Of a stretch of DNA of 64,000 nucleotides, positions 2,898 through 34,865 are shown one piece after another. The DNA comes from Podarcis vaucheri (lineage: Eukaryota), in assembly GCA_965113315.1 (NCBI GenBank), contig OZ220369.1; one strand, given 5' to 3'. The notes below the pieces were generated by a model. That model had not been told where the DNA came from and did not search any database. It was given only the letters and a program-made list of their open reading frames with translations. The position numbers and the translations under genes were made by a program. Positions within the stretch are counted from its first letter, which is position 1; every line of letters begins with the position of its first letter.

Positions 2898-4216
2898 TAC
2901 ACAAGCAGAATTCACGTTTGATACAGGAGCGAGGTATCACCTGCCATCAGTGTCCCTGCTGCAAATTGGCTTTCACTTTCAAAGATTACCTTCACAGACA
3001 TATGAAATGGAGGCATTCAGGATATGGAATACAGCCTGAAGTACCTGAAAATGTCCTAGCAGAGAAATCTCTATTCAAAATCACAAATAGTGCTTCAAAC
3101 AGAACTATGCTGCAGCACCTAGTGCCAAGTTGTGTTTACAAAGACAAAGATGAGGAGACACTGTTTTTAAAAGATATAAACAAAGAGACACAGAGTAGAA
3201 CGCAGGTTTCTAGATGCAATGAAAGTGGGACAACTTTAAAGCAGCTGTCACACCCAGCCCAACAATTATGTATAGGAGAGAGACCATGTTCATTTAGAAA
3301 GTGTGGGAGAAGTTTCAGCTACTCATCAGTGCTAGTCACTCCCATGCAAACACACACAAGAGAGAAGCCATATTCATGTAGGGAGTGTGGGAAAAGCTTT
3401 AGCCAGTCAGGCGTCCTGACCAGGAACAAGCGAATGCACACAGGAGAGAAGCCATATTCATGTGGAGAGTGTGGGAAAAGCTTCAGCTGGTCAGGACACC
3501 TGGCCAGCCACAAGCGAACGCACACAGGAGAGAAGCCATATTCATGTGGAGAGTGTGGGAAAAGCTTCAGCTGGTCAGGACACCTGGCCAGCCACAAGCG
3601 AACGCACACAGGAGAGAAGCCATATTCATGTGGAGAGTGTGGGAAAAGCTTCAGCCGGTCAGGACACCTGGCTGTCCACAAGCGAACGCACACAGGAGAG
3701 AAGCCATATTCATGTGGAGAGTGTGGGAAAAGCTTCATCCAGTCAGGAGACCTGGCCAAGCACAAGCGAATGCACACAGGAGAGAAGCCATATTCATGTG
3801 GAGAGTGTGGGAAAAGCTTCAGCCAGTCAGGAGACCTGGCCAGGCACAAGCGAATGCACACAGGAGAGAAGCCATATTCATGTGAAGAATGTGGGGAAAG
3901 CTTCAGCCAGTCAAGAGACCTGGCCAGCCACAAGCGAATGCACACAGGAGAGAAGCCATATTCATGTGAAGAATGTGGGGAAAGCTTCAGCCAGTCAGGA
4001 AACCTGGCCAGACACAAGCGAACGCACACAGGAGAGAAGCCATATTCATGTGGAGAGTGTGGGAAAAGCTTCAGCCGGTCAGGACACCTGGCCAGACACA
4101 AGCGAATGCACACAGGAGAGAAGCCATATTCATGTGGAGAGTGTGGGGAAAGCTTTAGCCGGTCAGGACACCTGGCCAGACACAAGCGAATGCACACAGG
4201 AGAGAAGCCACCTTAG
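2898..4216 (+). CDS. PRDM9: PRDM9 copy A, final exon: post-SET zinc finger, spacer and 10 C2H2 repeats
   Basis: Acceptor aaatag| is phase-compatible with the previous exon. [22 protein letters not shown] post-SET finger, TGEKPY-linked array, TAG at 4214-4216. Confidence 0.95.
3371..4210 (+). repeat. 84-bp zinc-finger minisatellite, 10 units (copy A)
   Basis: Near-identical 84-bp units. Helix -1/+3/+6 residues: QVR (His->Asn), WHS, WHS, RHV, QDK, QDR, QDS, QNR, RHR, RHR. Confidence 0.97.
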
Positions 4217-6251
4217 TGTAACATAGTGGATAGAGCTACCAGTTCCAGTACAGAGTATGGTGCTGTATTTTGAATGTTTTTAATCATAAAGTAAGCAGCT
4301 CTGCATTTCTGCTCATCTAGCAGTTTTGGTGCATTTCGCCATCTGCTGTAATAAGCAGGGCTCTAATCATTTGCTGTCTACTCTGTAGGAAACTTCATCA
4401 AGTGACTTTTTCTAAAGCCAGCACCACTGCTCATACCACCTCATTGTTTTAGAGCTCTAAAGACACAATTTTGGATATATGACCCTAGAAGTGAGTTTTT
4501 GTGTGGCAAACCCTAGAAGTTTATTTGGTGAACTTTTTTTCACCCTTATGCTTTTTAATGCTCCACAATCTGATTTAAAATGAAAGAAGTGCCTATGTTT
4601 TAAATGCTGAAGTTTTCCCATAAGCATTTCTTCTTGAGGGCCAATGTGAAAAAGCATAGGGTGCTATACTACTTGTGGAGTTACCTGATGTAATTTATAA
4701 AGCTATATTTACATTATTTCCTGCTAGCATCTTTTTATGTTGTGCTGAAACTGTTTTCTGATGCTATAACTGATGAATCTTCACTGATCTTCACTTAAAG
4801 ATTATTTCCAAAATGGGCCAATGTTACAATGAGGTTCAGGAGCTCTGATTTGAAGAAAAAGATTCAACCCTGACTACTAAACTCATTTCCATCTAACAGT
4901 GAAATCCCAAGATTCCATAATTCAGTTGAACAATGCTTACAGCTCTTGGGCTTTATTTCAATGGTCAATCATATTCTGCCCATGTTATCTTAATAAATGG
5001 CTTCTTCAAAAGTGACTGCTGTTACTGTCATAAATTAAGAAATAGTTTTCAATGTAACTGTCATATACTTTTTACATTAATCTGAAACTCTGGTCCAAAT
5101 AACACACTGTATATAAACACATATTATGAAATGGGATGCCTGCTTCTTCTAGCCAAAGTAGTTTTGTGAGGGAAACAGTCAGAAATGGAAGCAGGAGGGG
5201 AGTAAGATGCTTAATTCGTTATTTAGCTTTTCTTTTCTTCCACAGCTTTCCCTCAAGCCACTCTCCTCCAGGGGTGCCTGTTAAACTTGCAAAATACATT
5301 ATTTGGAACCTTGTAAGGAGAAAAGTAGCTTCAGGAGGAGTTGGTTGGGAAATGCCATGCACATTTCTGTGCACAAGGATGAAATGCCTTCCTCTCCCCC
5401 CTCCCCCATTTCAGATTTCAACCACCAAAGCTTCTTTGCCTAAAACAAACAACCACATGGATTTGTATTACACGCTTTTGCATGCCAAGTATGTGTTAGC
5501 CTTGCAACTTCTCAAAACTCTTATATTTTTCCAAATAATATAGTTCCATCTGCAGACAAAAGTAGAGCAAAGTATCAGGACTGAATCCTACTTGTCACAG
5601 GATAGCTATGAATAGGATATCCTGTGGTGTTTTTTGTTGTAAGAGTTAGTAATGGCACTAGAAGAGCTGATGTGGCTTGAGACCCCAGTGCTGTGGAAGG
5701 GAGCATGGCTAACTGGTTAACCCTTCTCTCCATGCTATTTCCCTCTGAGAACTGCCTGCTTCCCTGCTGATGCTATTTATCTTCAAGGCAAACCCATACA
5801 TATACGGTGGTAATATCCGTATGTATTGCTCCACAAGGCAACTAGCTCTAGGGATGCAATTTGGTTTAGGACAAATGACATGGGGGAAGTGTTGAGCCCC
5901 CACTCACGGTGCAGTATCACAAACATTTACCCTTCCTGATCCTGAAGACAGCCACTCCATCCTAAACAGCTTTACCTTGGAAGTCTTATTGACTTTATTA
6001 GGCCTTCTAAGTAAATGAAATGAGGATCACAGGCTCTTTGTGTATGTTATGTGTAGTAAGGGCTGATTCATATCATTCTTTTAAGGTGACTGAGAGAGAT
6101 GCAATAGATATTGCATATTGATGTTCCATGCCATAATGATAACACTTGCATAGGTCGTTCATGCATAAAATGGACAGGGTGGAAAGCCTTCATGAATCCC
6201 CATCCCTTTGCAAGCATATCTTCACATGGTGACCTTATAGTACACCTAGAT

Positions 6252-6572
6252 CAGGGGTCAGCAACCTTTTTCAGCTGTGGGCCGGTCCACCTTCCCTCAG
6301 ACCATGTAGTGGGCCGGACTATATTTTTTGGGGAGATATGAACAAATTCCTATGCCCCACAAATAACTCAGAGATGCATTTTAAATAAAATCACACATTC
6401 TACTCATGTAAAAACACCAGGCAGGCCCTACAAATAACCCAGAGATGCATTTTAAATAAAAGGACACATTCTATTCATGTAAAAATACGCTGATTCCCGG
6501 ACCGTCCGCGGGCTGGATTAAGAAGGCGATTGGGCTGCATCTGGCCTGTGGACCTTAGGTTGCCTACCCCTG
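6252..6572. mobile_element. hAT-like non-autonomous DNA transposon (removed in unit 2 by a larger deletion)
   Basis: Termini caggggtcagcaacc...ggttgcctacccctg. Imperfect 8-bp TSD acctagat/ctctagat. Confidence 0.7.
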
Positions 6573-8697
6573 CTCTAGATGGTGAGTGCTGCTGAAGGGA
6601 GCTAACACTGCTTAAGGGTAGAGAGAACTGCTAAAAGGCCCTATAGAGTATTATCTTAACAGTCTGTGCCACCAACTCTGTTGCCTGCCCATGGTTGTGA
6701 ATTGCTCTGGTTTTGTAAGGATAATACAGACACTTTTTAGAATAATTTAAAAGACATACTGTGTTTCACCAGAAATGGTACCAGACAAAAAACAAATTGT
6801 TCCCAGGCACAGATGGTGCATTAAGGTTTAGGCTACAAGGCATATGGGTTGTAGGAAAGAGCACTGGCTGAAGTACTGTATATAAAACTATCCATCATGA
6901 AGATAGCCAATGCATGTTTCCTTGTGCAAAGCTGGCCAGCTGGCCACCTGTGGTGTGAAAATGTGTACTGTATTGCATCTGATCAGACAAGCATCAAGAC
7001 AGGCCTGACTTTCCTGTACTGCTCGGTATTACAAAAGCACTGATCCAAACTGACCCTGTTATCATGAGGTTAGGGTTAGAAATAAGTTGTTCTCCTAAGT
7101 GAATAATAGAATATATCACTTTGATGTTGTTTTGAATATAAAGCAAGTAGGACATTTTCAAAATAAATGAAACATGTTGTTTCAAAACAATCTCATTTCA
7201 TAATAGTGAAACATTTATTTTATTAACATCCCAGATGCCAAAACTTGAAAAAATAAGGAAATTTAGTCTGTCATTAAATCGAAATAGGATTACAAACCGT
7301 CTCCCATGCTAGGGCTTGGATCAAGAGTATTAATGGGGTCAACTACCCATTTCCCTTATCATTGCTTCGACTCACCCACCTTTGGCAATCTTCTGTAATG
7401 CACAACCAGAGCTTCGTATGTCATGGTAAGAAGAGAGGGTCAGACGCCTATTTAGGGAAATAACCAAACACTGTGAAATGTCTGGTTATTTTTTTCATTG
7501 TCACCATGAAAACCTAAAACTCATTGGTTCTTCTAAGAGAGAGATACTCAATATAGTGTCCTCCATATGTTTTTGGACTATAACTCCAATCAATCCAGCC
7601 AACATAGATAATAGTAGGGGATAATGGGAATCATAGTTCTAAACATTTGGAGAGTATCACATTGGTTAACCCTATTACTTTTAGCCCAAGTCTAGCTCTC
7701 TCCAGCTCTCCTTTGGTCTTTGAAGAAAGCAAGGGAGGTTCATAGTGCAATCTATCAAAAAAACCAAAACCCTACAATATTAACAATGTTACAACTTTTT
7801 CCTATACAAGAGTGGGAAAGCATACAAGTAGCAGATCAAAGATGAAGACAAATATAATATTGAAACAAAAGTTGCATAGGTTTTTCACCCATGATATGAT
7901 TTCAGCCTTTTCCTGGCTTCTACCAAAGCAAATATTGGATAAGCTCTCAGTTTTTTTCTCCTATCTTGTGATTGAGGCAGTCTATGTACTATTTCTTTCT
8001 TGTTCATGTGTGTCTTGAAGCATTGTCCAATCAGCACCATATACAGCTGGATTTTGCTGCAAACCTATAGCCCAATTTCCTTCAGCATTCAACAATGGGG
8101 GAAAAATATACATTTGAACTGAACACAATGAGCACGCTTCCAAATCAGCTGCACTATAAATAGGTCTCTCTTAAATCCCAATTTCAGAAGGGAAAGTAGG
8201 AGCAGGCACAAGTTCTAAATGAATTAATCCTATAAGCTTCTCAGTTGTGCACCATTTGGTGAATATCACTGACGTGTTCTTTACATCTTGGAACAAATTT
8301 TCCTAGAAAAGGGGAGGGAAGCATCTCTTCCCAACAAGACCAAGAATGGAAAAGTGACTAGGAAGATGTCAAGTGAAAATAAAGTTAGTACTTGTCAGAA
8401 TATTTTGTCTGGAAAACGAAAATGCCAGGAAACTTGTGTTGTTTACCCTCCTGCCAAATCTTTCACAAAGCCAGATCTTTCACAAAGAGGAATCAATAAT
8501 TTCTTCTCAGCCTTCTTATTGTAAACCTGACATAGTTATACAAGTGTGAGTATCCTGGAGAGAGGAGAATATAGAATCCTTCCACCCCTGCCCTCAATTC
8601 TCCTCAGCAGGATGAAGTGAGGAAGAATATTCAGGATTCAAAAGGGCTGTTTATACTATGTGCCTGGAAACTGAATGCAAAGTGAAGTCCTTTTCTA

Positions 8698-8820
8698 TCA
8701 CGGTTTCTCTGGCTTCTCCAGCTGCAGATCAATCACTTTCACGTTCCCTATGTCCTGGTAGGTGGCCTGCAGCCCCCGTGAAATGTCCTCGTACATGGAA
8801 CAGTCATCCAGATTCAGTCC
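8698..8820 (-). pseudogene. CD79A: CD79A (Ig-alpha) last coding exon with ITAM, partial gene copy in unit 1
   Basis: Minus strand ttcctag|[40 protein letters not shown], matching human [25 protein letters not shown]...LEKP. Confidence 0.93.
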
Positions 8821-8909
8821 CTAGGAAGGGAAAACCAAAAAAGGTCAATCTCTGAAAGATAAGTCTATAAGTATGAATACTGATATAAAATCACAAAAAG
8901 GGGTTCACA

Positions 8910-9238
8910 GCGGGTGGCGCTGTGGGTTAAACCACGGAGCCTAGGACTTGCTAATCAGATGTTCGGCGGTTCGAATCCCCACAATGGAGTGGGCGCCCGT
9001 TGCTCAGTCCCTGATCCTGCCAGTTCGTGAGCACGTCAAAGTGCAAGTAGATAAATAGGTGGGGAGGTAAAAGGCGTTTCCGTGCGCTGCTCTGGTTCGC
9101 CAGAAGTGGCTTAGTCATTCTGGCCACATGACCCAGAAGCTGTACGCCCGCTCCCTCGGCCAATAAAGTGAGATGAGCGCCATAACCCCAGAGTCGGCCA
9201 CGACTGGACCTAATGGTCAGGAGCCCCTTTACCTTTAC
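8910..9238 (+). mobile_element. Sauria SINE (unit 1 only)
   Basis: tRNA-like head gggtggcgctgtgggttaaacc...ggttcgaatcc and (ACCTTT)n tail. Absent at the paralogous site ~39250. Confidence 0.85.
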
Positions 9239-9475
9239 TATTATTCTGAAGATGCATTGAGTTTTAGGGTGCATTTAAAAACAATGGACATTACAAATTT
9301 TGGTGCATTCATTTCAAAGTGTCTGCTTTGTGGGATGTGACATCACTGTAGCAGTCAAATACAACATTTCCAGTTTGCCCAGAGTGGACACATGGGGTGT
9401 TGCTCCAGCCAGGAGGACTTTCTGTCACTAGGTATAACTTGATACAACCCTTTGGCTGCAACCCTAAACAAGTTT

Positions 9476-9627
9476 AAAGGGACCCCTGACCATTAGGTCC
9501 AGTTGTGGCAGACTCTGGAGTTGCGGCGCTCATCTCGCTTTATTGGCCGAGGGAGCCAGTGTACAGCTTCCGGGACGTGGCCAGCATGACTAATCCGCTT
9601 CTGGCAAACCAGAGCAGTGCATGGAAA
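9476..9627 (-). mobile_element. Sauria SINE 3' fragment
   Basis: Reverse complement of the 3' half of the SINEs at 8910 and 12923. Confidence 0.75.
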
Positions 9628-10507
9628 CTTCACACACACTCACACACTACATACACCACATTTCTGTTATAAAATTCATAGAAAAATCAACCATACATTG
9701 GATTTGCACTGTTCCATTTTTATTTTACTCCATATGACAAGGACTATCAAAGGGGGGTGACCAGGGGTGTGGCTTGGTTCTGGTCAGCCATAATCCCTTC
9801 ACCATCCCAGCACATCCACAGGAGCCCTGCCCAGTTGCTATGCCAACCCTGATGATCCCAGACAGAAGACAATCAAGATCACAAAGAACTTGCATATGGG
9901 AGTGGATTCAGCATGGACTGAAACAAAGGACAATGATCAGATCTTCCCTCTGGGGCAGGAAACTGCCAACTCCTCTTTGTCTCCTGGAAGTGACTCATGG
10001 GAGGGGGAAAGGAGGAACCAGCCAGGTGACAGGACACTCAGGTTACCACCACAACTCCTCCCTCAACCCCTCCTTTCTGTAATGTATGCATGATGTTTCT
10101 GGGGGTGGGCTTGACCTAGAGGAGGGGAATTTCAAAAGTTTTTATAAGACCTTGCACACTATTTTTCTTTGTCTTTCCTCTCTTTTGCAAGTGAGGGGAA
10201 CACCCTGTTGCAACAGTTCAATAAAGGCCAAGCCTACAGGCTGCTGTTTTGCTCCAAGTTATCCTGGTTGGTGTCTTTGTTTTGTCCAAGGGAGCCCTCG
10301 GATTTTTCCGATAACAAGAATACTGGCTGGGCTTCCTATTTCCAGTATCATATGAATACACCATGGTGTCTATCTCCTTCAGCTTTGGAATTTTCCCACA
10401 TTCTGCTGCACAGAAGCATGGGCGTAGCCAGGATTTTTCTTAACATGTTTATTTATGGGGGGGGCAGTGCCCCCCCACGCCCATGTACAGAAGTCTCCCA
10501 GAATTAC

Positions 10508-10576
10508 CACATATATGTTCTCCTCTTCATAAGCCTTCTTCTTGGCTTGTAAAAGGCGCTCGTTTTCCCATCTCTT
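10508..10576 (-). pseudogene. CD79A: CD79A cytoplasmic exon, unit 1
   Basis: 69-nt exon cag|KRWENERLLQAKKKAYEEENIYV|gtaatt; human counterpart [23 protein letters not shown]. Confidence 0.9.
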
Positions 10577-11677
10577 CTGCAAAAAGAGAGAGAGAGAGAG
10601 AGAGAGAGAAGAGAAGAGAAGGAAAACACTATGAAAACAAATGTGGTACATCGGGTAGGCATCACTGGGCCTGCCAAAGCCCACAGCCCAGTAGTGAGCC
10701 CAATGCCATTCTCTGGAGCTGCTCCTCAGTGATGCTGTCTGTTCATCTGCCCTCTAAGTGTGCAAACATAAGAATGAGATAATGGAGACATAGTCTCTAT
10801 GTGCTTTTCCTTCAAGTGCCTGGGCTTCCTGGGCTCCACCAAATTGGAGATGGTTCTTTGCTTAGCTGCATCAGTTTTCGGTGCATTTTACATGCTTTTA
10901 GGCCACAAACTCAGGCCACACACACACACACCACACATTTAAAGCACTCTTCTGTCACTTTAACAGCCATGGCTTCTCCCAAACACTCATGGGAACTGTA
11001 GTTAAGTGTGCCAAGAGTTGTTAGGAGACCCCTCACAGAGCTGCAATTCCCAGCACCCTTAACAAACTACAGTTCCCAGGATTCTTTGAGGGAAGCCATG
11101 ACTGTTAAAATGGTACAATAATGGCTTTATTTTTTTTAAGTATGTTGTGGATATAACCCTAAACCAGTTTAACTGTCCTTCCCCCATTCACAGTTGGGAT
11201 TCTCTGAGGAAGTGAGAGGTGAGTTATAGCGAATTGTTGATCACCACTTCTTGCTAAATGACAATTACCAGTATTGAGAGGCTCATAATCTTGGTAGCCA
11301 TTTACTGCTTAGATTTCACAGGTTCTCAATACATTGGTCACAGTTAATGGTAACTAAAGAGTTGATCACAGAAGAGCATAACAATTAAATCAATTTTAGT
11401 TTAAGGGCCATTTCATACAAACAAAAACTGGTCCTCAGCTGATCAGCAGAAGATAAAACTGAACACATGTTACGACATTCTGTCTGGCCATATGGAAAAG
11501 TAGTTGCATGAACTTTCTGTCATGCGTGATTGGGGTGCATAGGTGAAACCCTACATCCTGGGTAGCTGTGTGTGACAGAGAAATAAAGAGGCCATTTCAC
11601 CAAATTCCTAGTTGTACTTCACACAGCATTTGTAGATGGACAATTCTAGCTTATGTGAACTAGTCTTCAGTTAGCTG

Positions 11678-12153
11678 TGTAGCTAAAACAACAAGTTTCA
11701 GATAAGTACCAGGGGCCAGGACATAGTCTAAAGGTGCATGATGTCATGGAAATGACGGAGAACAAAGGGGAAGAGGAGAGACCAGTAGAGGAAGGGGGGC
11801 AGGAAGTGGCAATGGAGGAAAGGAGGGAAACTCAGGAAGAGGGAAGGCTCTCTGATGTTGGAGCAGAGCCTCAACACTGCACAGGAAGCTCTGGCACGGA
11901 GGGCGAGGCAGTGCCGGTTCCATCTGCTCAGGAAAGGAGAGTGTTAAAGAGGAGGAGGCAGAGACATCAAATGAGAATGCCTCGCCTCTTCTGCTGGAAA
12001 AGGAGCAGATGTAAGTCACTCCGAGAATCTGACCCAGAGGATTCGGATGCATGATTATGTGTGCTGCTTGTACATATGTAAAATAAAGGATGTATATATG
12101 TATCTCTGAGTGAGCAGAGGCATTTCTTGCGGAGAGCATTCATAAGCCATCAC
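11678..12153. mobile_element. Possible solo LTR or other interspersed repeat (also ~41880-42356)
   Basis: TG...CA ends, internal AATAAA and a purine-rich pseudo-ORF. No clear TSD. Confidence 0.3.
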
Positions 12154-12625
12154 ACATGACACAGCCATCTTGTTCTTGTCAGTGCTTGGATGGGAACCTA
12201 CCTGAGACCCTTCTGTGTGCTTCCTTAAGTTCCATGACAGTGGAGAAGTGGGATATTAATGTGATAAACACATCACAAACATCTTTTACTAAAGGAACAC
12301 AGCAAACATCATTTTGTATTTCAGAGCCATCCAATTATTGTTCTCAGACAATACCCTTGACCCATGTGATTCCAGTGAAGTGCCATTTGGGGGAAAACTC
12401 TTGTATTAGGCAATTATCTAGATGTTGTGCCTGTTGCTGGTGTACATGCTGATAAAAGGACAGTTTGCCCCTTTGGGGTAACAATCTACTCTTTAAAAAT
12501 AGGGGAAAAAAGCAGAACAAGATCTGGTGACTGGAAACTGTAGGCTGACAGATTCATTATGCACCATGCTCTCCCTGTCTGTCACCATGCGTACAAAGAA
12601 TAGTCAGAGGGAAATAACAGCTCAC

Positions 12626-12744
12626 CCTGAAGAGCAAAAAAAGACCAGGACCAATGGCACAGATGAGTAGCAGGAAACCCTCAGCTGTGATGATCTTATT
12701 TTTGACGCCTTCTGTCATGTTCAGGAAAGAGGCTGGTCGAGGCC
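12626..12744 (-). pseudogene. CD79A: CD79A transmembrane exon, unit 1
   Basis: 119-nt exon ctag|[40 protein letters not shown]|gtgag; human counterpart [37 protein letters not shown]. Confidence 0.92.
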
Positions 12745-12922
12745 CTAGAAGACAGCAAGCAGGAGAGTGTTTGATCCAGAAACCCCACAGCATCCCTAAC
12801 TATTTTATCACTCTCTTGCAATCCCAGGTAAAACTACAAGTATACAAAGAAAAATATGCACCCCAGGTATTATTGCATTAAGTGTCTTTGTTTGTATTGA
12901 TTTACACTGCCTGCCCTGCCAC

Positions 12923-17201: not shown

Positions 17202-17696
17202 ATGGCATCTGGAGGTGAGATGCCCACTGGGACAGAAGCCCAGGAAAGAGGGCAGAAAATGCCAGCTGGGGCAGGAGCCCAGGGAATGTGGGAAGAAATA
17301 CCTCCTGGGACAGAAGCTCAGGGGTTGGGGCAAGAGATGCTCAGGGATGATGAATGCCAAGGGCTGGAGGGCAGAGGCAGTTCCAGCATGGGAGAAGCGG
17401 GAGGGATGAGGAGAGAGGCATCTGACAAAAACGATACCCCAGGGAAGAGGGCAACTGAGGCTGAATGGCCTGTTCCCAGTGGGGGAGATCTCATGGAGAA
17501 TGATCCCAGGGATCTGAGAGGAGAGCCCCTGGAGAAAGGAGCCACTGGGGCACCACCTCCTTCTGATTCTCTTCTTACAAAAAGTGCTATGGGGGGGAAG
17601 TCGGGGTCAGGTAGCCCCAAAAACAGTTGCTTAGACAGGGGTTCTACAGAGAGGGTCAAAAAGCCAAGCCATAAGAAAAGGGGGCAGAAGCCCAAG
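17202..17696 (+). CDS. PRDM9: PRDM9 copy B exon 1 (165-aa N-terminal low-complexity region)
   Basis: gaaATGG Kozak context, in-frame stop upstream, 495-nt open frame ending AAG|gtgagg in phase 0 with the KRAB exon. Frame conserved in copy C. Confidence 0.7.
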
Positions 17697-18332: not shown

Positions 18333-18456
18333 GCTGAAGATACTTTTAAAGGGCTGGTAATCTACTTCCCTAAAGAGCAATGGGCTGAAATGGGAGAATG
18401 GGAAAAAATTCGTTATAAGAATATGAAAGAGAACTATGAGTTTATGACTCAATTAG
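18333..18456 (+). CDS. PRDM9: PRDM9 copy B KRAB exon
   Basis: tag|AEDTFKGLVIYFPKEQWAEMGEWEKIRYKNMKENYEFMTQL G|gtgag; matches the PRDM9/SSX-type ancestral KRAB. Confidence 0.95.
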
Positions 18457-19358: not shown

Positions 19359-19463
19359 GTCTTCCTACACCTAAACCAACATTTATGTATCATGCACGGC
19401 AACCTCCCAAAACTACAAATGAGTCCTCTGAGTCTGATGAGGAATGGACACCAAAATCTATAG
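19359..19463 (+). CDS. PRDM9: PRDM9 copy B exon 3 (end of KRAB region, DEEWTP)
   Basis: Poly-T acceptor; GLPTPKPTFMYHARQPPKTTNESSESDEEWTPKSI; gt donor; phase-compatible. Confidence 0.93.
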   Translation, partial: VFLHLNQHLCIMHGNLPKLQMSPLSLMRNGHQNL

Positions 19464-21045: not shown

Positions 21046-21119
21046 TAAAATCTTTTAGGACACCGTGTAACCTGAATAGCTGGAAAGAGGAAAAGAAAAA
21101 AAAGTACCCTCTTGATCAA
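21046..21119 (+). CDS. PRDM9: PRDM9 copy B exon 4
   Basis: ccag|VKSFRTPCNLNSWKEEKKKKYPLDQ|gtaag; phases 1->0 fit the neighbours. Confidence 0.75.
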
Positions 21120-22474: not shown

Positions 22475-22524
<50 letters not shown>

Positions 22525-22630: not shown

Positions 22631-22748
22631 AATAAGCAAATAAACACTATGGGACTTACTTCCAAAGACCAAGAACATATAAAGAAAACTGACAAAAATA
22701 CATGTGCAGATGTTCATACTACAGACATTGCAGCAGAATCAAAGACTG
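22631..22748 (+). CDS. PRDM9: PRDM9 copy B exon 5
   Basis: ttgcag|NKQINTMGLTSKDQEHIKKTDKNTCADVHTTDIAAESKT+1 nt|gtaag; phases 0->1 fit. Confidence 0.75.
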
Positions 22749-23887: not shown

Positions 23888-24028
23888 ATATTGAGAAGAA
23901 AGCTTTGTCGGGGAAAGCAAAGAATAAGAAAAGAGATCAGGAGAAAGAAGTTAGTACATACAGTTTGCGGAAGAGGGAGAGAAAAACATATACGGAAATA
24001 AATGAGCCAAATGATGATGATTACTTGT
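23888..24028 (+). CDS. PRDM9: PRDM9 copy B exon 6 (SSXRD)
   Basis: cag|DIEKKALSGKAKNKKRDQEKEVSTYSLRKRERKTYTEINEPNDDDYL|gtaag; matches PRDM9 YSLRERK...Y.E..EP.DDDYL. Confidence 0.93.
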
Positions 24029-25351
24029 GTAAGTTTATAATCAGCATTTTCCATCTTCAATTCTTATGTTGCCTTGGAAAAATATTTATAAAACAGTGCT
24101 TTTAGATATTCTATTACATATTTTTCAGGTTCAGGTTTATTCCTAATTCTAATGCTAATAATGCTAAGAAACTCTCCCTTTATGCTTATATTTTAAAAAG
24201 CGCTTAATCAAAATTATGTTAATTAAAATGCCTGTATCAGGCTTGTAACAATTGTTCAAAATTGGAAAAGGAAGAGCAATTCTATACTGGCACTATTAAA
24301 CTCTCTTTTTGTGACACTACTCCATTTTGTAAGAAAGTACATCAGACTTTCATATAAAAAGTTCCTGAGCTATAATCAGTATCCCCAATCACATTTTAAA
24401 AAGAAAACAAATTTCCTATAAATTTGCCATGGGCCATTTATTCACAATAGACTCGCAATTTGATTATATTCACGGATGATGGGTGATGTACAGAAGGTCT
24501 GCAGTTACCCTAGCCCTTCTCTAAACAGGAGGTGGTCTTAATGTCAGAATCTGTACAAGTAATCTGAGGCAGTTGAACTGAACTAATGCTGTTCTTGATT
24601 TGTCAGAAACTGGCAGATTGTGATAAAGGGTTAAAGCCAATGCTAGGCTTACTCAGTTTAGACCCATTGTAATTAATTTAATATTTAATATTACTAAATT
24701 AGATCATTTGATTTGAAAAGGACTTCTCTGAGTAAGAATTAACTGGACACAACACAGAGGTTTTTGAAAGGACTACGTATGCTATAGAAGTGCCAACAAC
24801 AAACACATATTTCATACTCATAGAAATGAAAGTATCCAAAGACTATGTAGACCAATCCCATAGAATAAGAATAGACTGTCCATCTACCCATAACCACTCC
24901 TAGAGTGCAGCTGTCATCTGTGGACCACAGTGTGCCACACGGAGTTAGCAGATACAGCCAGTAATAGCTTGAGGGAATTTGTGCAATTAAAGTATGGTTA
25001 CACACTATAAGAAAAGGAAACCCAACCAACCAAATGTTAGCGGCTAAACTAGTTTAGAGGGGAAATCCTTCCTTCTTCAAAGAGATTCCAATGGGAAACA
25101 CGTCAATACCACTTAATATTCTGATAGGGAATGCCAAGGTTGCATAGCAGGGGAAATAATCCTTCTTAACATTTATGGGCAACGACAAACATAAGAAATA
25201 ACGAAACATTTCCCTGAATTCATCCAACTGTACCATGAAGCCTTGGAGCACCCTATGGTGCTAGAACTATTGTTAAATGGAACTACCAGGGTTCGTAAAA
25301 CTATCCCACACACCATCACCCCTCCCCTACTTTCCCCATCTTTTCTTCCCA

Positions 25352-25604
25352 GTGTGGTGTAGTGGTTAAGAGCGGTAGTCTCGTAATCTGGGGGACCGGG
25401 TTCGCGTCTCCGCTCCTCCACATGCAGCTGCTGGGTGACCTTGGGCCAGTCACACTTCTTTGAAGTCTCTCAGCCCCACTCACCTCACAGAGTGTTTGTT
25501 GTGGGGGAGGAAGGGCAAGGAGAATGTTAGCCGCTTTGAGACTCCTTCGGGTAGTGATAAAGCGGGATATCAAATCCAAACTCTTCTTCTTCTTCTTCTT
25601 CCCA
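25352..25604 (+). mobile_element. Squam3-like tRNA SINE, unit-1-specific
   Basis: gtgtggtgtagtggttaagagcgg head, (CTT)n tail, TSD ttcttccca. Empty site at ~56605. Confidence 0.85.
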
Positions 25605-26318
25605 ACCTCATACTGTTTGCAACACTAACGTCTCACAACAAATGAAACTGATCTGTAGAATACACAACTTGAAAAAAGAGACAATGCACATATTTTTGTA
25701 TACTGATAAATATTTAATAAATATTATTTTAAAACAACAACTATCAGGCTGACTATGCCTAGAACCAGACAGAATTCTATCTGCTGCAATTAGATTATCT
25801 GCTGATCATATGCTATGTCTAAGGTGGGGCTTAGCAGGCTCATGGAAAAATGTATTCAGTCCTTGGGGAAGTTTCTTGGAACAACTTCCATTAACCAGCT
25901 TCTTGGTGCTCTGTGCTGCCTTGCTGAGAACCTGTGTTCTTTTTGTTTGTGACTTTGGCCTGTGACTGGACTTTGCTTCTCTTATTGACCACCCCCTCAA
26001 TGTGACCTTAGGTTGTGAACCCAACCTTGCTCTCTGGACTGCCCCATAAGTAGACTCCCACCCCTGGCATCCTTATCCCCTGAAGCAGTACAGTAGCCCT
26101 GTCCATATCACCATTCCCCAAGACCAGAGCTTCAGTTGGAGAGCCGACCACAAAATTCATTGTAATAATTATTGCACATTGACACAAATCCCCCACGTTT
26201 TACAACTTTAAATATTTATATAGATTGCCAATCATAACTGTAGCTATTTGAAAAAACTCATTGATGGAAAAAACGTCCTGCAGCATCATGTCTCACTTAT
26301 CTTTCTTTCCCTTCCTAG

Positions 26319-26590
26319 TTTGTGAATACTGCCTGCTATTCTTTATTGATGAATGTTCAGTTCATGGTTCTCCAGTTTTCATCAAGGATACAGCAGTAGA
26401 AATAGGACTGGAAGAGAGGGCCACCCTCACTTTACCTCCAGGTTTGAGAATTGGCCCATCAGGTATCCCCAAAGCTGGCTTTGGAGTCTGGAATGAAGGA
26501 GAAATTCTGCCTCCAGGAATTCATTTTGGGCCCTATGAAGGGAAAATCACAGAGGAAGAAGAAGCAGCCAACAGTGGTTATTCTTGGCTG
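26319..26590 (+). CDS. PRDM9: PRDM9 copy B exon 7 (pre-SET zinc knuckle and PR/SET start)
   Basis: [17 protein letters not shown]...[22 protein letters not shown]...[23 protein letters not shown]|gtatg. Confidence 0.97.
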
Positions 26591-27427
26591 GTATGATTTA
26601 CTCACAGCACTTTTATTTTAAAAAAATTCCATGTAGAGTACCACCTTGCTGAATGAACAAACCCCACCCTCCAGGCAGAGTCAAATGACTTTGTTCAGTG
26701 CTCCTTCCCTTTACAATGTCAAGCTTGTGAGTACAGGAAGTAGAACCTTCTTCCTGATGGAGCCAAAGTGTTGGAACTCCCTCCTTAGAGAAGTCTTGTT
26801 CCTTCATCCTTTTAAGTTTTATGAAAGTGATCAAGAAAGTTTCTGCCTTTTCTGTTTAATAATCCTCTGTTTTTAAGTATGATTTGATGGAATATCAATT
26901 ATGAATAAACTTCCTTGAATGTTGTAGAAGTGGGCTAAAAATTGTATGTTAAAATGCATTTAACGAAAGAAAATTTGAAACAATAACTCAGAATGGTGAA
27001 CTTTTTCATTTTAGTGTATCAGAACTCAAATGTTAATGAATACAAGTAATCCTATTGTTGTCTGTCACCACCCAATGTTGAAACACAATTTGAATTGCAG
27101 CAAGATCATAGATGGTTCAATGCAGAATTGTCAGGGCCTTGCAGGACGTAGACAAATGTGCACTGGGGTAGCGGGGCTGGAGTCGGGAGAGGGGATCTGT
27201 TGTGGCAACCTGTACCAGCCAGGGGGCAAGAGTCAGACAGGGGAAGCTTCAGAGCTGGAGGTTGGAGCACAGGATGTGTTGGAGGCAGAGGGGAAAGAGG
27301 CAGGTCAGGCAAGGGAAGAGTTGGGTTCTTCCCCATACTCTCCTGCACCACTGTCTCCTAAAACCAGGAGGGGATTGAAGAAGGAAGAGCAGAGACAGCT
27401 TCCATGCAGGTGTAGCCACTGTGAGAG

Positions 27428-27720
27428 CCAGTGTGGTGTAGTGGTTAAGAGCGGTAGTCTCGTAATCTGGGGAACCGGGTTTGCGTCTCCGCTCCTCCAC
27501 ATGCAGCTGCTGGGTGACCTTGGGCCAGTCACACTTCTCTGAAGTCTCTCAGCCCCACTCACCTCACAGAGTGTTTGTTGTGGGGGAGGAAGGGAAAGGA
27601 GAATGTTAGCCGCTTTGAGACTCCTGAAGGGGAGTGAAAGGCGGGATATCAAATCCAAACTCCTCCTCCTCCTCCTCTTCTTCTTCTTCTTCTTCTTCTT
27701 CTTCTTCTTCTTCTTCTTCT
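27428..27720 (+). mobile_element. Squam3-like tRNA SINE (shared by both units)
   Basis: Same family as 25352; long (CTT)n tail. Confidence 0.85.
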
Positions 27721-28149
27721 GTGGCCCATCAATGAGAGGTACATAAACTAGTTGAGGGGGTGGCTCCCCTTGTTGCTGCAACTGCTCCACAGAGCACAGG
27801 GCAGAATTAGGCAGTGTGGTTATTTGGAGCTATAGAACTACTTTCTAGATGAAGGCAAGTCCCTTCGACTCTATTCTGCCCCTGCCCTGTTCTGCCCCCT
27901 TGCTGCACCAAAAACGGCATGTGTATGCTGCTGCATGCAACTAGAATGTGCACAAGTGGGCAGTTGTTTGTACTGTAAGTGTTTGCTTGAGACAATAATG
28001 AATTAACTATCTGCTGTGTGCATCCTGGGGAGTATCTTTAACAAAAATGATTATAACTTTAAAAGCAGAAAGTACCCATCTTGACTATGGAGTCTAGCCA
28101 GATAACAGACACGTGCAGATAATATACCTATGCAATGGTGAGACATATA

Positions 28150-28843
28150 CCGTATTTTTCGCTCTATAACACGCACCTGACCATAACACGCACGTAATTT
28201 TTAGAGGAGGAAAACAAGGAAAAAAATATTCTAAACGAAACAGTGGATGTATGATTTTTGTGGTTCATGCAATGGCCACAGACATGTGATCTGACGGTGA
28301 GTTTGGGATAGCCCAATGCAAAAATCCTGAGGATCCATGTGGATCCGTGCTTTGTAACCACGTTTTAAGTGGGGAGGGAAGGAAAAGCACGCAAGGGACA
28401 AGGAGCATGCGTGGGGCGGGTGGAGAAGGATGCTGCTAATAATGCAGAAGAGGGGTATAAGGGGAGAAGGCTCCTCTCCTCTCCCGCTTTGCTCCTTTAA
28501 AACAATCAGGCTCTGCTTCTCTCCCTCCTCCCCGGCTTAGAGAGCTGAAAAGCTTTGCTGCTATTTAGCGAGCTGAGTGGGGAGGAGAGAGGGACAGAGA
28601 GCACGGTTTAAAGCAGCCAACCAGACAGGAGTCGCTTACACTTGTGTAAGCGGCTCCTCTCCCGCTTTGCTGTTTCAAAGCGAGCCACGGAGGAGGGAAG
28701 GAAGGGGAACCATGGATCCTCTGCTCACAACTGCAGCAGACCCCCCCCATGCCACCCATAGGCATTCGCTCCATAACACGCACAGACATTTCCCCTTACT
28801 TTCTAAGAGGGGAAAAGTGAGTGTTATGGTGCAAAAAATACGG
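28150..28843. mobile_element. Tc1/mariner (pogo/Tigger-like) non-autonomous element, unit-1-specific
   Basis: TA|CCGTATTTTTCGCTCTATAACACGCAC...GTGAGTGTTATGGTGCAAAAAATACGG|TA. Clean single-TA empty site at ~59092. Confidence 0.85.
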
Positions 28844-29484
28844 TACCTTAAGCAAAAAAGCCAGGGAAGTTCTTGAAATGTATTTCTCACCCAAACCAAT
28901 ATTTTATTGCTTCTGCTTATTTGTTTATTCAAAGTGAATTGTCTTATTAAAATAAAAAGTACCGTATAGTTCACCACTTAGACTATTCTAAATTATTTAA
29001 ACACCAAGTTTTAAAACTCCAGGAAAACTCCTTGAAAGAAAATGACGAGAATCCAGAAAACAAGCCTGCCAGGAAACAGAGCTACAGAATAGGTGGGGAG
29101 GGTGGCTTCATAATTAGGCAAAAGGTGAAAAGGGTTCTTAGTAGTTGCAATATGTGGGAAGAGGAAGATGCAGGATATTACCATGGAGGGGGTCTTTGTG
29201 CCTGTTGGGGTTGCACAAAAGAAGGGGGAGACATGGAGGTGAAGGTGAAAACGGGTGCAAAGCAGGGCTGCAGAAACGAGAGTTGTGCTTTCGAACATAG
29301 GTTTGAGAGGGTGAAAAGGGTTCTTAGTAGTTGCATTCAGTGGGAAGGGGAAACTCTAAGGGGGTTAATAGGGGGAAAGGGCTGATGACCAAAGCAAGCA
29401 GGGGAGCAGAGCCCCTTAACATCCTACATATTGTTGTAGTGTTACCATATTGATGTGTGTGTTTCGTGTCTATTTTAATTACAG

Positions 29485-29552
29485 ATTACTAGGGGGCAAA
29501 ACTGCTATGTTTACATTGATGGAAAGGATGAAACTAATTCCAACTGGATGAG
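29485..29552 (+). CDS. PRDM9: PRDM9 copy B exon 8 (PR/SET middle)
   Basis: 68-nt exon cag|ITRGQNCYVYIDGKDETNSNWMR|gtaaa. Confidence 0.96.
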
Positions 29553-29688
29553 GTAAACATCCTTGATCAAACTAAATGAAGAGAGACTTTTAAAACAAGG
29601 GTCTTCATACACCTGGAAAGGCCAATAGAACAGAATAACTTAAATGTCATTCTGGGTGCCTACAGGTTACCCATCCGTATTCTTAATA

Positions 29689-29888
29689 CAGTGGTACCTC
29701 GGGTTACATACGCTTCACGTTACAGACTCCGCTAACCCAGAAATAGTGCCTCGGGTTAAGAACTTTGCTTCAGGATGAGAACACAAATTGGGCAGCGGCA
29801 GCGCTGCAGGACCCATTAGTTAAAGTGGTGCTTCAGGTTAAGAACAGACCTCCAGAACGAATTAAGTACGTAACCAGAGGTACCACTG
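29689..29888. mobile_element. Tc1/mariner MITE (shared; 62798-63014 in unit 2)
   Basis: TA|CAGTGGTACCTC...GAGGTACCACTG|TA. Confidence 0.85.
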
Positions 29889-30719
29889 TATCTTTTAACT
29901 GTTGGGAGTAAAGCACAACATTTGCAATAACCTGCTTGAACTGTGGTGAGGAATAGACAGAAATGCAACCTGTTCTTCCTTCTTCACTGATTTCTTCTCT
30001 TTTAGTAAATGCTTGTCAGTAAAGTAGATCACTTCCTTTCAGGCCTTAATTCTTTTCTGCTTCTCCAAGTAGTCAGTATGAGTTAGCTTGTGCTAGTGGC
30101 TGCATCTTGGCTACATGTAAAATCTATACATAGAATGGTTCCTCCTCCAAGACTAATAAATGTTAAGTTTTATTTATCCTTTCAACAGCAGTCTTACCAG
30201 GGTATTTTTTCTGCATACTGCTTTGCAAATTGTGCACTATTTACCAAAGTTCAGTAGTGCCAGTACTAGAGAGAGAAGTGGCACCTTTCAAAGGTAAAAA
30301 GAATATCTTGGTTTGGAAAGAGAGTGGTGGGCCACTAAACTGCTTAGTAGGATCAGTCAAAGCTATGGGTTCATCATTCCTAGTAGAGCAAATGCCTGGT
30401 AGTCTGCATAAGTCTTGCTTCTGAAATGAATGGGAGGAGCAACCCAGACAAATATATTCTTCTACCACCATAAAAAAAAGAAAGTGAAGTTACCACAGGT
30501 AAGAAGACCAAAGTTTATTTTACAAAATTCTGTTGTGTGTTGTAACCTCCAGTGTATAATATGCCCAGTGTTCAACAAATTTAAAATATTTCAGCTGTAC
30601 ATTTCATTACTTGAATAATAGAAGAAAGTAATGCGATTGTTATGCTTCATAGTACTTCTCTAATTTCCAGCTTCCCTGACTGAGTACTTTTAGTTACCCT
30701 CTTAACAATGAACTTTCAG

Positions 30720-30901
30720 ATATGTTAACTGTGCCCGGAATGAGGAAGAGCAAAATCTTGTTGCCTTCCAGTATCATGGGAAAATCTACTACAGAGCATG
30801 TAAAATAATCCTTATTCATTCTGAGCTTCTGGTTTGGTATGGAGAAGAATATGGAAAGGAGCTTGGCATCAAGTGGGGCTCTAGATGGAAATCAAGAAAA
30901 G
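30720..30901 (+). CDS. PRDM9: PRDM9 copy B exon 9 (PR/SET end)
   Basis: Identical to 227-408. Confidence 0.96.
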
Positions 30902-33384
30902 GTATAATAATCATGCATTGTTTTAAATCTTCCCTAACACTGAAATCTGTTATTGCTTCTTTTGTTTGTCTTAGGCAGCATTCTCCTAGATACATCTAAT
31001 ATATCTTCATATTTCTATGTGTTATATACAGTAAATCTAAAGGACTAGTTCATAGAACCATAGAATTGTAGAGCTAGAAGGGTGGTTGAGGTAAGAGAAA
31101 TGTAGGACAGCTGGGGGAAAGCTTTCATGTTGCAGAGAAATGCACAAGGATTAGGATCAATTTTGCATGGTGAATATGTGGGCTGAAAAGACTGGTGCTG
31201 CGTTTTTGACATAGTGGTAGTGCTTGTATGACTTTTGAACATGACTCCAGTTCTTAAGTCTTCTCATATGTAGAGCATGGGAGTGGTGCCAGCCTTGAGC
31301 AGGCTGGCACAAGTCATATTGCTGCCTGCTGCAGGAAAGTGAAGTAACAACACACCTGCCAGTAATATGAGACATAGTCCACCAGGATATTATTCTGTGC
31401 CTGTCTCTTTGAAAGGAATGGAGGCGTCATACAAATATTACTATACCTCTCCTATTTATTTCAGTGGGAACTTGTGCAGTACAACATCCCCGTGGATTGT
31501 CCCACATTTGTTAAATATGGCTTTCCCCCTCAGTCAAAATCCATCAGCTGGGAGGTTGTCACACCTTGGCTCACGGTAGACCCCCTCACATAGCATGCCA
31601 ATATATTGTTGAACATCACCCCACTCTCTGAGCGGTGTGAAATTCCAGAGATTCTAGGAATGAGGGACATCAGAGTCTGTGGTGTCTTTAAGATTGATTT
31701 ATTTATTTATACAAATATACAACCTGAGCCTGTGATGGAGGGACTCACAGAATCAACACCCCAAAATATATTGCTTCTTCCATAGTCACAGCCTTTGATT
31801 CGAATAGAAATCAAGCATGTTTCTCACTTTCTGGCTTCTGCTTTGCTTCTAACCCAGGTGCCACACACAACTGGCTATTGTCCTTCTAACTACCAGTCAG
31901 GTGAGAGGGGGCACCCATTTGTCCTCTGGCACAGAACAACTTGCTTTGTTATACTATTGACCATACTTAGGGCCATTAACTCGCCAAGGAATTTGCCTGG
32001 CTAGTTAAACAATGGAATTAGAAGAGACTCCAGCATCATACAGGCTGACACACACACACCCCGCCAAGGTCACAACAATACTACAGTTGTTGTAATATTA
32101 GGAAGAATTTCATCATATACAGTAGTTGTCTCTTGTGCAAATATCTAATTTCCTCTGTATGCAGGTGTTATCTTAAAAAATGAGAAATGCATTTGGCATA
32201 GAAGAAATTCTCTCTCAGAACTATTTTAATATAGTTAAAGCACCAAAATTTAGACTTTATTTGCATTCAATAGTATTGCAGTATTTTAACACACCTCCAG
32301 ATTTTGGGTCATTCCACGCCAAATTACCTGGTGCCATGTGCTTTCATGACTCAGATTTTCTGCAATTTTTAAAATGTGTAGATACTTATGAGATAACCAA
32401 ATTAATTTTTAAAGATTTTTTGCTCCAAAATTGGGAGCAGGAGAATTTTTTGAAAATTTCGTTTTTCGCGCAATTTAGGCTTATGCAATTTCTGCGTCAG
32501 TTTAGAAAAACCCCTCAAATTAATTTTTAAAGATTTTTTTCATCCAAAATTGTGCACAGGAGAATTTTTTGAAAATTTCAATTTCTGCGCGATTTAGGCT
32601 AATGCAATTTCTGCATCAGTTTAGAAAAAAACTACTGTTTGTTTTTGTTTTTTCAGCCAGTTGGGCTTATTTTGGTATCAAAACAAAGCTAAATGTGGTC
32701 TCTTTCAAAATAAGGTATAAAAATGGTATTAAGAAAAGGGTCACTGACTATTCAAAGTGAATTTTTGTCATTTTATTCCTGGTAGGTTCGATAAGCCATA
32801 GCGCGCAAACCACAACTAACACGTGTATCATCCTTTTGTTGTAGAATGGGGTAACTATGTACTTGTTATGTTTTAAAAATAAGGAGGGTGTTTTTTGTGG
32901 TTATAAAATAAATTGATTTCTAAGAAATTTTTTTACAAAAAATATTACTTTTTTGGACAGGTTTAAGGTTTCTTTGAGCCTGAAATAATTCACACATTTG
33001 TGAGAATAGTTAAAATTAAGTTTAATTTATTATTTAATAAAAACAAAATATATCTTAGAGCCCTTGTTCATTTTATTGTGTAAAACACTTCTGCAATGAC
33101 ATGGTCAAAGCTATTTTGTTTCCCATACATGTAATATAGTCAATGATGCTGTTTTGACCACTGTATGCAATATGACCTTTCTGAATGCTGTGGCCAGTCT
33201 TGGTCTTCTTACTGCTGCTTGCTCCTTCAGGACAACCCTCTGTTTTGGCATGTGTCTTTTTCCTTGGCTCTCAGTGAGCTTGTTGGGTCCTGTAGTTTCC
33301 TAAATAATGTAGTCCCATATGCCCATTTGTCATGCATGGTTGAAAATAGCTACTAAAACTCAAATCTTGTTTGTTCTCAAATAG

Positions 33385-34844
33385 TACACAGGCAGAATTC
33401 ACGTTTGACACAGGAGCGAGGTATCACCTGTCATCAGTGTCCCTGCTGCAAATTGGCTTTCACTTTCAAAGATTACCTTCACAGACATATGAAATGGAGG
33501 CATTCAGGATATGGAATACAGCCTGAAGTACCTGAAAATGTCCTAGCAGAGAAATCTCTATTCAAAATCACAAATAGTGCTTCAAACAGAACTATGCTGC
33601 AGCACCTAGTGCCAAGTTGTGTTTACAAAGACAAAGATGAGGAGACACTGTTTTTAAAAGATATAAACAAAGAGACACAGAGTAGAACTCAGGTTTCTAG
33701 ATGCAATGAAAGTGGGACAACTTTAAAGCAGCTGTCACACCCAGCCCAACAATTATGTATAGGAGAGAGACCATGTTCATTTAGAAAGTGTGGGAGAAGT
33801 TTCAGCTACTCATCAGTGCTAGTCACTCCCATGCAAACACACACAAGAGAGAAGCCATATTCATGTAGGGAGTGTGGGAAAAGCTTCAGCCAGTCAGGAG
33901 ACCTGGCCAGCCACAAGCGAACGCACACAGGAGAGAAGCCATATTCATGTGGACAGTGTGGGAAAAGCTTCAGCCGGTCAGGACACCTGGCCAGGCACAA
34001 GCGAACGCACACAGGAGAGAAGCCATATTCATGTGGACAGTGTGGGAAAAGCTTCAGCCGGTCAGGACACCTGGCCAGCCACAAGCGAACGCACACAGGA
34101 GAGAAGCCATATTCATGTGGAGAGTGTGGGAAAAGCTTCAGCTGGTCAGGACACCTGGCCAGACACAAGCGAACGCATACAAGAGAGAAGCCATATTCAT
34201 GTGGAGAGTGTGGGAAAAGCTTCAGCTGGTCAGGAGACCTGGCTGTCCACAAGCGAATGCACACAGGAGAGAAGCCATATTCATGTGGAGAGTGTGGGAA
34301 AAGCTTTAGCCAGTCAGGACACCTGGCCAGGCACAAGCGAATGCACACAGGAGAGAAGCCATATTCATGTGAAGAATGTGGGGAAAGCTTCAGCCAGTCA
34401 GGAGACCTGGCCAGGCACAAGCGAATGCACACAGGAGAGAAGCCATATTCATGTGGAGAGTGTGGGAAAAGCTTCAGCTGTTCTGGAAACCTGGCTGTCC
34501 ACACGCGAACGCACACAGGAGAGAAGCCATATTCATGTGAAGAATGTGGGGAAAGCTTCAGCCAGTCAGGAAACCTGGCCAGACACAAGCGAACGCACAC
34601 AGGAGAGAAGCCATGTTCATGTGGAGAGTGTGGGAAAAGCTTCAGCCAGTCAGGAGACCTGGCCAGCCACAAGCGAATGCACACAGGAGAGAAGCCATAT
34701 TCATGTGAAGAATGTGGGGAAAGCTTCAGCCAGTCAGGAAACCTGGCCATCCACAAGCGAACGCACACAGGAGAGAAGCCATATTCATGTGGAGAGTGTG
34801 GGAAAAGCTTTAGCCGGTCAGGACACCTGGCCAGACACAAGTGA
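33385..34844 (+). CDS. PRDM9: PRDM9 copy B exon 10: post-SET finger and 12 C2H2 repeats, last truncated by TGA
   Basis: Spliced CDS totals 3039 nt (1012 aa plus stop). TGA at 34842-34844. Confidence 0.95.
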
Positions 34845-34865
34845 ATGCACACAGGAGAGAAGCTA
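33858..34865 (+). repeat. 84-bp zinc-finger minisatellite, 12 units (copy B)
   Basis: -1/+3/+6 residues: QDS, RHR, RHS, WHR, WDV, QHR, QDR, CNV, QNR, QDS, QNI, RHR (truncated). Confidence 0.97.

Follow-up and report, generated by a model that had tools for sequence, protein, structure and literature searches.

For each of three snakes one PRDM9 ortholog has been listed, and recent duplications of the gene are recorded in fishes and mammals, not in reptiles (Baker 2017, PMC5519329). A complete PRDM9 is reported in the bearded dragon, together with loss of the gene in anoles and fence lizards (Cavassim 2022, PMC8892340). More than one ruminant PRDM9 copy has been associated with variation in recombination rate (Baker 2017, PMC5519329), and a study of cattle paralogs deals with those on chromosomes 1 and 22, of which the chromosome-22 paralog has disruptive mutations (PMC4874674). 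Tandem PRDM9 duplication in salmonids, ruminants and cnidarians is cited in a 2026 preprint; in the literature on PRDM9 in squamates, lizards, Podarcis and Lacertidae we found no tandem PRDM9 copies in a squamate. Here we analyze a stretch of 64,000 nucleotides from Podarcis vaucheri (contig OZ220369.1, assembly GCA_965113315.1), called the window below, in which an original prediction made from the letters alone had pointed to PRDM9 paralogs with different zinc-finger arrays. We consider it likely that the window holds a real tandem array of PRDM9 genes in at least three units, that the finger arrays have diverged by exchange combined with selection at the DNA contacts, and that each array has its own predicted motif.

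The duplicated locus and its PRDM9 genes

Self-BLAST resolves the 64-kb window, which does not contain any N, into a head-to-tail segmental duplication of at least three units of 30.5–33 kb, with one PRDM9 gene per unit, each on the + strand:

1-30493, + strand: unit 1 of the segmental duplication; colinear self-BLAST blocks, 92–99% identity to unit 2
30494-63619, + strand: unit 2; colinear self-BLAST blocks, with private long interspersed nuclear elements (LINEs) at 44181-46371 and 59552-62401
63620-64000, + strand: start of unit 3, which continues past the window end; 381 bp that differ from unit 1 at 2 positions and from unit 2 at 3

Unit 1 contains the 3' end of a first gene (A), the tail of a CD79A-like gene and the 5' part of a second PRDM9 gene (B). 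Substitution divergence between units is 0.7–2.1% over the gene body and 2.3–7% in intergenic sequence.

On the + strand, the long reading frames at 2918-4216 and 33405-34844 both terminate in C2H2 arrays. The gene model was built with full-length relatives as templates, P0001 (756 aa) and then the better-fitting P0004 (937 aa), where exons were searched singly and the reading phase was checked by arithmetic. P0001 was dropped as a template because it has an internal Met start without a nearby GT donor, skips exons 4–6 and uses a weak exon 9/10 junction; the junctions of P0004 coincide with strong GT-AG sites in the window. The resulting model of gene B has 10 coding exons and 3039 nt (1012 codons and a stop), with GT-AG ends throughout, consistent phases and no internal stop:

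17202-17696, + strand: gene B exon 1, with the ATG; 92% match to P0004 residues 1–165; donor AAG/gtgagg, phase 0
18333-18456, + strand: gene B exon 2, KRAB; Pfam KRAB 25 bits, cut-off 20.4
19359-19463, + strand: gene B exon 3; found by tblastn with P0001 and P0004; AG and GT at its ends
21046-21119, + strand: gene B exon 4; 100% match to P0004 residues 242–266; AG and GT, phases fit
22631-22748, + strand: gene B exon 5; 97.5% match to P0004 residues 266–305; AG and GT
23888-24028, + strand: gene B exon 6, SSXRD; Pfam SSXRD 30.8 bits, cut-off 23; present in models P0004, P0006 and P0008
26319-26590, + strand: gene B exon 7, pre-SET zinc knuckle and N-terminal PR/SET (Y276); PDB PRDM9 4ijd/6nm4, E = 1e-40; PRDM2_PR positions 2–48
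29485-29552, + strand: gene B exon 8, middle of PR/SET; PRDM2_PR positions 50–71
30720-30901, + strand: gene B exon 9, C-terminal PR/SET (Y341, Y357); PRDM2_PR positions 73–122; PDB PRDM9, E = 5e-27
33385-34844, + strand: gene B exon 10, post-SET zinc finger, linker, decayed finger, array and premature stop; acceptor caaatag/

Searched exon by exon with Pfam, gene B has the domain order KRAB, SSXRD, PR/SET, one post-SET finger and a C-terminal C2H2 array in the last exon, and positions 2–122 of the 123 in the PRDM2_PR profile are covered across exons 7, 8 and 9. Among solved structures, those closest to exons 7 and 9 belong to PRDM9 (4IJD, 6NM4, 4C1Q), with E = 1e-40 and 5e-27; PRDM11 follows with 8e-18 and 6e-9. 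The relatives that have names are labelled PRDM9 or PRDM9-like, the nearest of them coming from the lacertid Zootoca vivipara, and protein searches with the lineage-specific linker returned three clusters only. Alignment to the PDB PRDM9 places Y276, Y341 and Y357 in gene B, where all three are kept; the numbering equates position i of 4IJD with residue i+194, that construct presumably spanning residues 195–415, consistent with its 221 residues. Judged from sequence, the genes are PRDM9 by every feature assessed here. The three tyrosines are the markers of catalytic competence in Baker et al. 2017 (PMC5519329), and gene B has these sequence features of a complete PRDM9 in the sense of Baker 2017: a KRAB box, a predicted SSXRD exon, a PR/SET domain with the three tyrosines, an 84-bp array and contact-site diversity.

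The window also holds the last two exons of gene A and most of a third gene, C:

227-408, + strand: gene A exon 9, C-terminal PR/SET (Y341, Y357); identical to gene B 30720-30901, AG and GT kept
2898-4216, + strand: gene A exon 10, post-SET zinc finger, linker, decayed finger, 10-unit array and stop TAG; open frame, acceptor aaatag/
48976-49470, 50095-50218, 51107-51211, 52748-52821, + strand: gene C exons 1–4; open, AG and GT
54079-54196, 55336-55476, 57302-57573, 62594-62661, + strand: gene C exons 5–8; open, AG and GT
63846-64000, + strand: gene C exon 9, truncated where the window stops; identical to gene B over 155 bp

Gene C is intact over exons 1–8 and the visible part of exon 9. Compared with gene B, its exon 1 differs at 16 of 495 nt (3.2%), with 8 replacements, and exons 2–8 at 4 of 902 nt (0.44%), two of these in exon 2. 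Exon 1 (17202-17696; 48976-49470), the fastest-changing exon between these copies, encodes a lineage-specific N-terminal extension of 165 residues built on 13-residue repeats (MPTGTEAQERGQK / MPAGAGAQGMWEE / IPPGTEAQGLGQE) without a Pfam match. The Hemicordylus PRDM9 model P0018 opens with a similar repeat.

The public isoform models P0001–P0003 of the closest relative omit exons 4–6, including SSXRD, in a skip that stays in frame (phase 1 to phase 1), and they also use the weak exon 9/10 junction. The skip may be an annotation error or a real isoform that lacks SSXRD. Since public models of close relatives skip the SSXRD exons, such genes would be misclassified as incomplete, which is a warning for annotation.

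Finger arrays and the sequence before them

The arrays of genes A and B are 84-bp minisatellites with the following coordinates:

3371-4210, + strand: array A, 10 units of 84 bp (Tandem Repeats Finder period 84, 10.2 copies, 94% matches)
33858-34865, + strand: array B, 12 units of 84 bp (Tandem Repeats Finder period 84, 12.2 copies, 90% matches)
34842-34844, + strand: TGA in unit B12, where the other 21 units all have CGA

The residues at helix positions -1, +3 and +6 are QVR, WHS, WHS, RHV, QDK, QDR, QDS, QNR, RHR, RHR in array A and QDS, RHR, RHS, WHR, WDV, QHR, QDR, CNV, QNR, QDS, QNI, RHR* in array B, exactly as the original prediction had read them for its 10 and 12 fingers. Over the 22 units the column entropy is 1.66 bits at -1, 1.69 at +3 and 1.81 at +6, compared with 0.27 bits or less at most framework columns; helix position +2 is near-invariant (Gly in 21 of 22 units). 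Some framework columns do vary, specifically column 4 (G/E/R, 1.18 bits), column 22 (M/T, 1.0), column 8 (K/E, 0.85) and column 5 (E/Q, 0.44). At the DNA level the nine contact-codon bases of the 84 carry 44% of all pairwise base differences, where 10.7% would be expected, and 8 of these 9 bases are variable compared with 21 of the 75 elsewhere (Fisher p = 7e-4). The ratio of non-synonymous to synonymous diversity (pN/pS) reaches 1.98 in the three contact codons, compared with 0.48 in the remaining 25. The claimed concentration of variation at -1, +3 and +6 is thus borne out, with the addition that framework columns 4, 8 and 22 vary as well.

The prediction had also called this pattern the signature of a hotspot-directing PRDM9. 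Baker's statistic, the share of amino-acid diversity that falls at positions -1, 2, 3 and 6, supports the claim: it is 0.52 for A, 0.45 for B and 0.65 for the relative P0001, with a uniform expectation of 0.14. The complete PRDM9 genes of python, garter snake and habu score 0.46–0.57 and rank first to fifth among the ~180–200 C2H2 genes of each genome (Baker 2017, PMC5519329). In the relatives P0001, P0004 and P0006 the finger framework is the same, yet the contact triplets are different.

Each array has one damaged terminal finger. In finger A1, Asn replaces the first zinc-binding His (LTRNKRMH), and the TGA in B12 takes away the final 9 codons and with them the second His of finger 12. Because that codon is CGA in all 21 other units, the TGA is a CpG transition. 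The two defects probably disable one terminal finger each and leave 9 canonical fingers in A and 11 in B.

Before the arrays the two genes are almost the same. The original prediction gave an identical SET exon 9 and about 4 nt differences in the roughly 470 bp before the array, and both figures hold: exon 9 agrees at 182 of 182 bp, the exon number being correct in the 10-exon model of gene B, and the 473 bp that lead up to the array in exon 10 contain 4 differences (33391, 33409, 33431 and 33689), of which K/R and I/T are amino-acid replacements. In intron 9 there are 23 differences over 2483 positions, giving ~99% identity across exon 9, intron 9 and pre-array exon 10.

The arrays themselves are still partly colinear, so that the claim of arrays differing in length and order stands for length and only in part for order. 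Six pairs of units align at 0–3 differences, specifically A2 with B2 (3 differences), A3 with B3 (2), A6 with B6 (2), A7 with B7 (2), A8 with B9 (0) and A10 with B12 (3); B8 and B11 appear as extra units in the alignment, and 20 of the 22 units are distinct. The ten aligned pairs differ at 37 of 840 bp (4.4%), and contact-codon bases take 19 of these differences, or 19 of 90 bases (21% per base; binomial p = 1e-9). The other 18 are spread over 750 framework bases (2.4%), compared with 0.9% in the flanks.

Divergence between the paralogs changes in a step at the array. On the 5' side (1-3370 against 30494-33857) it is 0.9%; on the 3' side (4211-8885 against 34866-39253) it is 6 of 125 positions (4.8%) immediately after the array and 3.4–4.1% over the next 3 kb. 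The array may therefore mark the end of a tract homogenised by recent gene conversion or unequal exchange, and the near-identity of the gene body may reflect such an event rather than very fast change of the arrays after a recent duplication. The claim that the paralogs are nearly identical outside their arrays accordingly holds for exon 9 and the pre-array sequence, with the proviso that gene conversion may be its source, and this near-identity probably makes the common ancestor of the arrays look more recent than it was.

Each finger contacts a base triplet, with +6, +3 and -1 specifying its 5', middle and 3' base respectively. With this minimal and crude recognition code, which assigns no base to W and C at -1 or to S, V and I at +6, and with the damaged terminal fingers A1 and B12 included, the predicted motif is GGG GGG GAA NCA GCA GCA NGG NGN NGN GTA for A and GGG NAA NCA GAA NAN GCA GGA NCN GGN NGG GGG NCA for B; the motif strings given earlier from an approximate C2H2 code were reproduced in this way. 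The two arrays share a vocabulary of triplets (GGG, GAA, NCA and GCA). In the best register 11 specified bases agree and 6 disagree, and 1906 of 2000 shuffles of the finger order score as well, a comparison to be read with the crude code and its many undefined positions in mind. No register brings the two motifs into agreement, which fits different full-length motifs, as weak evidence. The distinct hotspot sets put forward in the original prediction are an extrapolation from this crude code.

For comparison with sequencing reads we took a 4201-letter stretch and four runs, all in the form of contigs, and DNA contigs from two samples of the same species cover this stretch. One of these contigs combines G at 33391 with T at 33409, at a distance of 18 bp. 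This combination is found in P0004 and matches neither A nor B, which implies a third sequence type in the species. In two small runs of a related species, whose RNA nature is guessed, contigs begin at 33383 and have depths of 42.6 and 22.9, compared with 4.7 and 3.7 in the intron (6–9 times higher). A start at 33383 is as expected in a de Bruijn graph if exon 9 (...AAAAG) is spliced to 33385, and is a hint of transcription. Exon 9 and the exon 9–10 joint are both absent among the listed contigs of these two probable RNA runs, where conserved stretches were possibly filtered out. These two runs, X17 and X18 (33383-33941), differ from each other at 17 or more sites in pre-array exon 10 (33499-33842), as if the related species too had more than one type of PRDM9 sequence.

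Explanations for the copies and other features of the duplication

In the reading we favor, that of a real tandem array, unequal exchange within the minisatellite would add and remove units, and diversifying selection on DNA-contact residues would change the arrays further. Gene conversion or unequal crossing-over between paralogs would keep the rest of the gene homogeneous, with the tract boundary at the array. If the genes work as they do in mammals and snakes, every array would recognize a DNA motif of its own early in meiosis, the SET domain would trimethylate H3K4 and H3K36 near the bound motif, and double-strand breaks would then follow. If two or more copies were expressed, one haplotype would specify several partly different hotspot sets. 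A more far-reaching version, which we put forward tentatively and regard as rather doubtful though quite conceivable, is that a squamate lineage keeps at least three full-length, catalytically competent tandem PRDM9 genes whose bodies are homogenised while their arrays are kept different, with several arrays expressed per haplotype.

Several points weigh against the reading of a real array with diverging, functional members. Gene A is present in the window as exons 9 and 10 only, its exons 1–8 falling outside. Among the 26 replacement differences between aligned units, 12 affect codons other than the contact codons, and both the missing His of A1 and the nonsense codon in B12 could be early decay. 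The sole hint of transcription comes from the two related-species runs of guessed RNA nature. Contig depth has no single-copy baseline in the fully duplicated 4.2-kb stretch, so that copy number rests on the assembly, and the motifs were predicted with a crude code only.

Some of these points could suggest that the copies are real but that only one of them, perhaps neither A nor B, directs recombination, the others being young redundant duplicates in decay, comparable to primate PRDM7 or the truncated salmonid copies, whose arrays drift by minisatellite instability under relaxed constraint. We think this unlikely. The nonsense codon of B12 and the lost His of A1 would suit it, but both lie in terminal fingers and leave 11 and 9 canonical fingers. 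Replacements are found at framework positions too, but pN/pS outside the contact codons is 0.48. Likewise, exon 1 of B and C differs at 16 of 495 nt with 8 replacements, as decay might have it, but over exons 2–8 the same two copies differ by 0.44% compared with 0.7–2.1% in introns, and all visible exons of B and C have open frames and undamaged splice sites, the catalytic tyrosines being kept as well. Decay of the PRDM7 kind would appear as loss of the array, substitution of a tyrosine or a broken frame, and gene B loses its last 9 codons only. In favor of this reading, salmonids retain one full-length copy per species (PMC11703093).

That the units are alleles or haplotypes of one polymorphic PRDM9 locus, placed end to end by the assembly, strikes us as very improbable. 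Three units stand in one gap-free stretch, which two haplotypes cannot yield, and this counts against such an artefact, whereas a copy number taken from the assembly would leave room for it. PRDM9 arrays are indeed highly polymorphic within species, as in python (Baker 2017, PMC5519329), and the 5' flanks are 99% identical, but the intergenic divergence of 2.3–7%, the private LINE insertions of 2.2 and 2.9 kb, the 3.2% difference in exon 1 between B and C and the third pre-array sequence type in the reads are all at odds with alleles of one locus. An ordinary cluster of KRAB zinc-finger genes, which act as transposon repressors, would share with the locus a KRAB box and a fast-evolving tandem C2H2 array in a duplicated cluster. 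We rejected this reading, to which we assign a negligible probability, since KRAB directly before the fingers is incompatible with the domain content found: SSXRD and a complete PR/SET lie between KRAB and fingers, the best solved homologue is PRDM9 (E = 1e-40), and the named relatives are PRDM9 or PRDM9-like.

The duplication carries further features besides the PRDM9 genes. The private LINE insertions of unit 2 measure 2191 bp (44181-46371) and 2850 bp (59552-62401) and have RVT_1 and endonuclease Pfam matches, and unit 1 holds a private segment of 692 bp. The LINE at 59552-62401 sits in intron 7 of gene C and is probably young, because its endonuclease (390 aa) and reverse-transcriptase (491 aa) frames are open. 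A CD79A-like last coding exon, which codes for the second half of the immunoreceptor tyrosine-based activation motif and is preceded by AG, lies tail to tail with PRDM9 in both units, so that part of CD79A was co-duplicated:

8698-8820, - strand: CD79A-like last coding exon, unit 1
39065-39187, - strand: CD79A-like last coding exon, unit 2
27030-27542, + strand: 170-codon open frame in PRDM9 intron 7, first copy
58013-58525, + strand: 170-codon open frame in PRDM9 intron 7, second copy

The duplicated frame in intron 7 has no Pfam match and is unlikely to be a gene; on the opposite strand a poly-purine tract encodes a long run of Lys and Arg.

Significance and comparison with known systems

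Theory on the evolution of PRDM9, from hotspot erosion and dosage to hybrid sterility, takes each individual to have a single gene with two alleles. If several intact copies lie in cis and differ in their arrays, such a locus would let one test how extra 'alleles' affect hotspot usage and the speed of motif erosion, and would also allow a test of the tug-of-war with promoter-type hotspots described in snakes. If several arrays are in fact expressed, double-strand breaks would be spread over several motif sets and the 'Red Queen' turnover of any one array would be slowed, which would also buffer against the asymmetric-binding problems behind PRDM9 hybrid sterility in mice.

The complete PRDM9 genes of other squamates (python, garter snake, habu, corn snake and bearded dragon; PMC5519329, PMC8892340, 10.1101/2023.07.11.548536) resemble those described here in their KRAB-SSXRD-PR/SET-ZF (zinc finger) order, their catalytic tyrosines and their share of contact diversity. 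Those genes have been treated as single genes, whereas here there are at least three complete or apparently complete head-to-tail copies, of which A and B have different arrays. KRAB zinc-finger clusters also show tandem duplication and fast change of contact residues, but lack PR/SET, SSXRD and the homogeneity of an 84-bp minisatellite, the units here being 90–94% identical in DNA.

The closer parallels are duplicated PRDM9 genes. Cattle and other ruminants have several PRDM9 paralogs with different arrays, as here, but the cattle paralogs lie on different chromosomes, whereas the present copies are ~31 kb apart and 96–99% identical. Primate PRDM7 is a recent duplicate of PRDM9 in which Y357 is substituted and the ZF array mostly gone (Baker 2017, PMC5519329); copy B, unlike PRDM7, keeps Y357 and 11 canonical fingers. 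The a and b copies of salmonid PRDM9-alpha arose, as here, by tandem segmental duplication, and gene conversion between them blurs their phylogeny (Raynaud et al. 2025, PMC11703093). Salmonids keep one full-length copy per species (PMC11703093), whereas here gene B is full length and gene C intact over the eight exons seen. Duplicated PRDM9 genes with diverged arrays are thus already known, and what is unusual at this locus is the presence of at least three complete or apparently complete copies in tandem.

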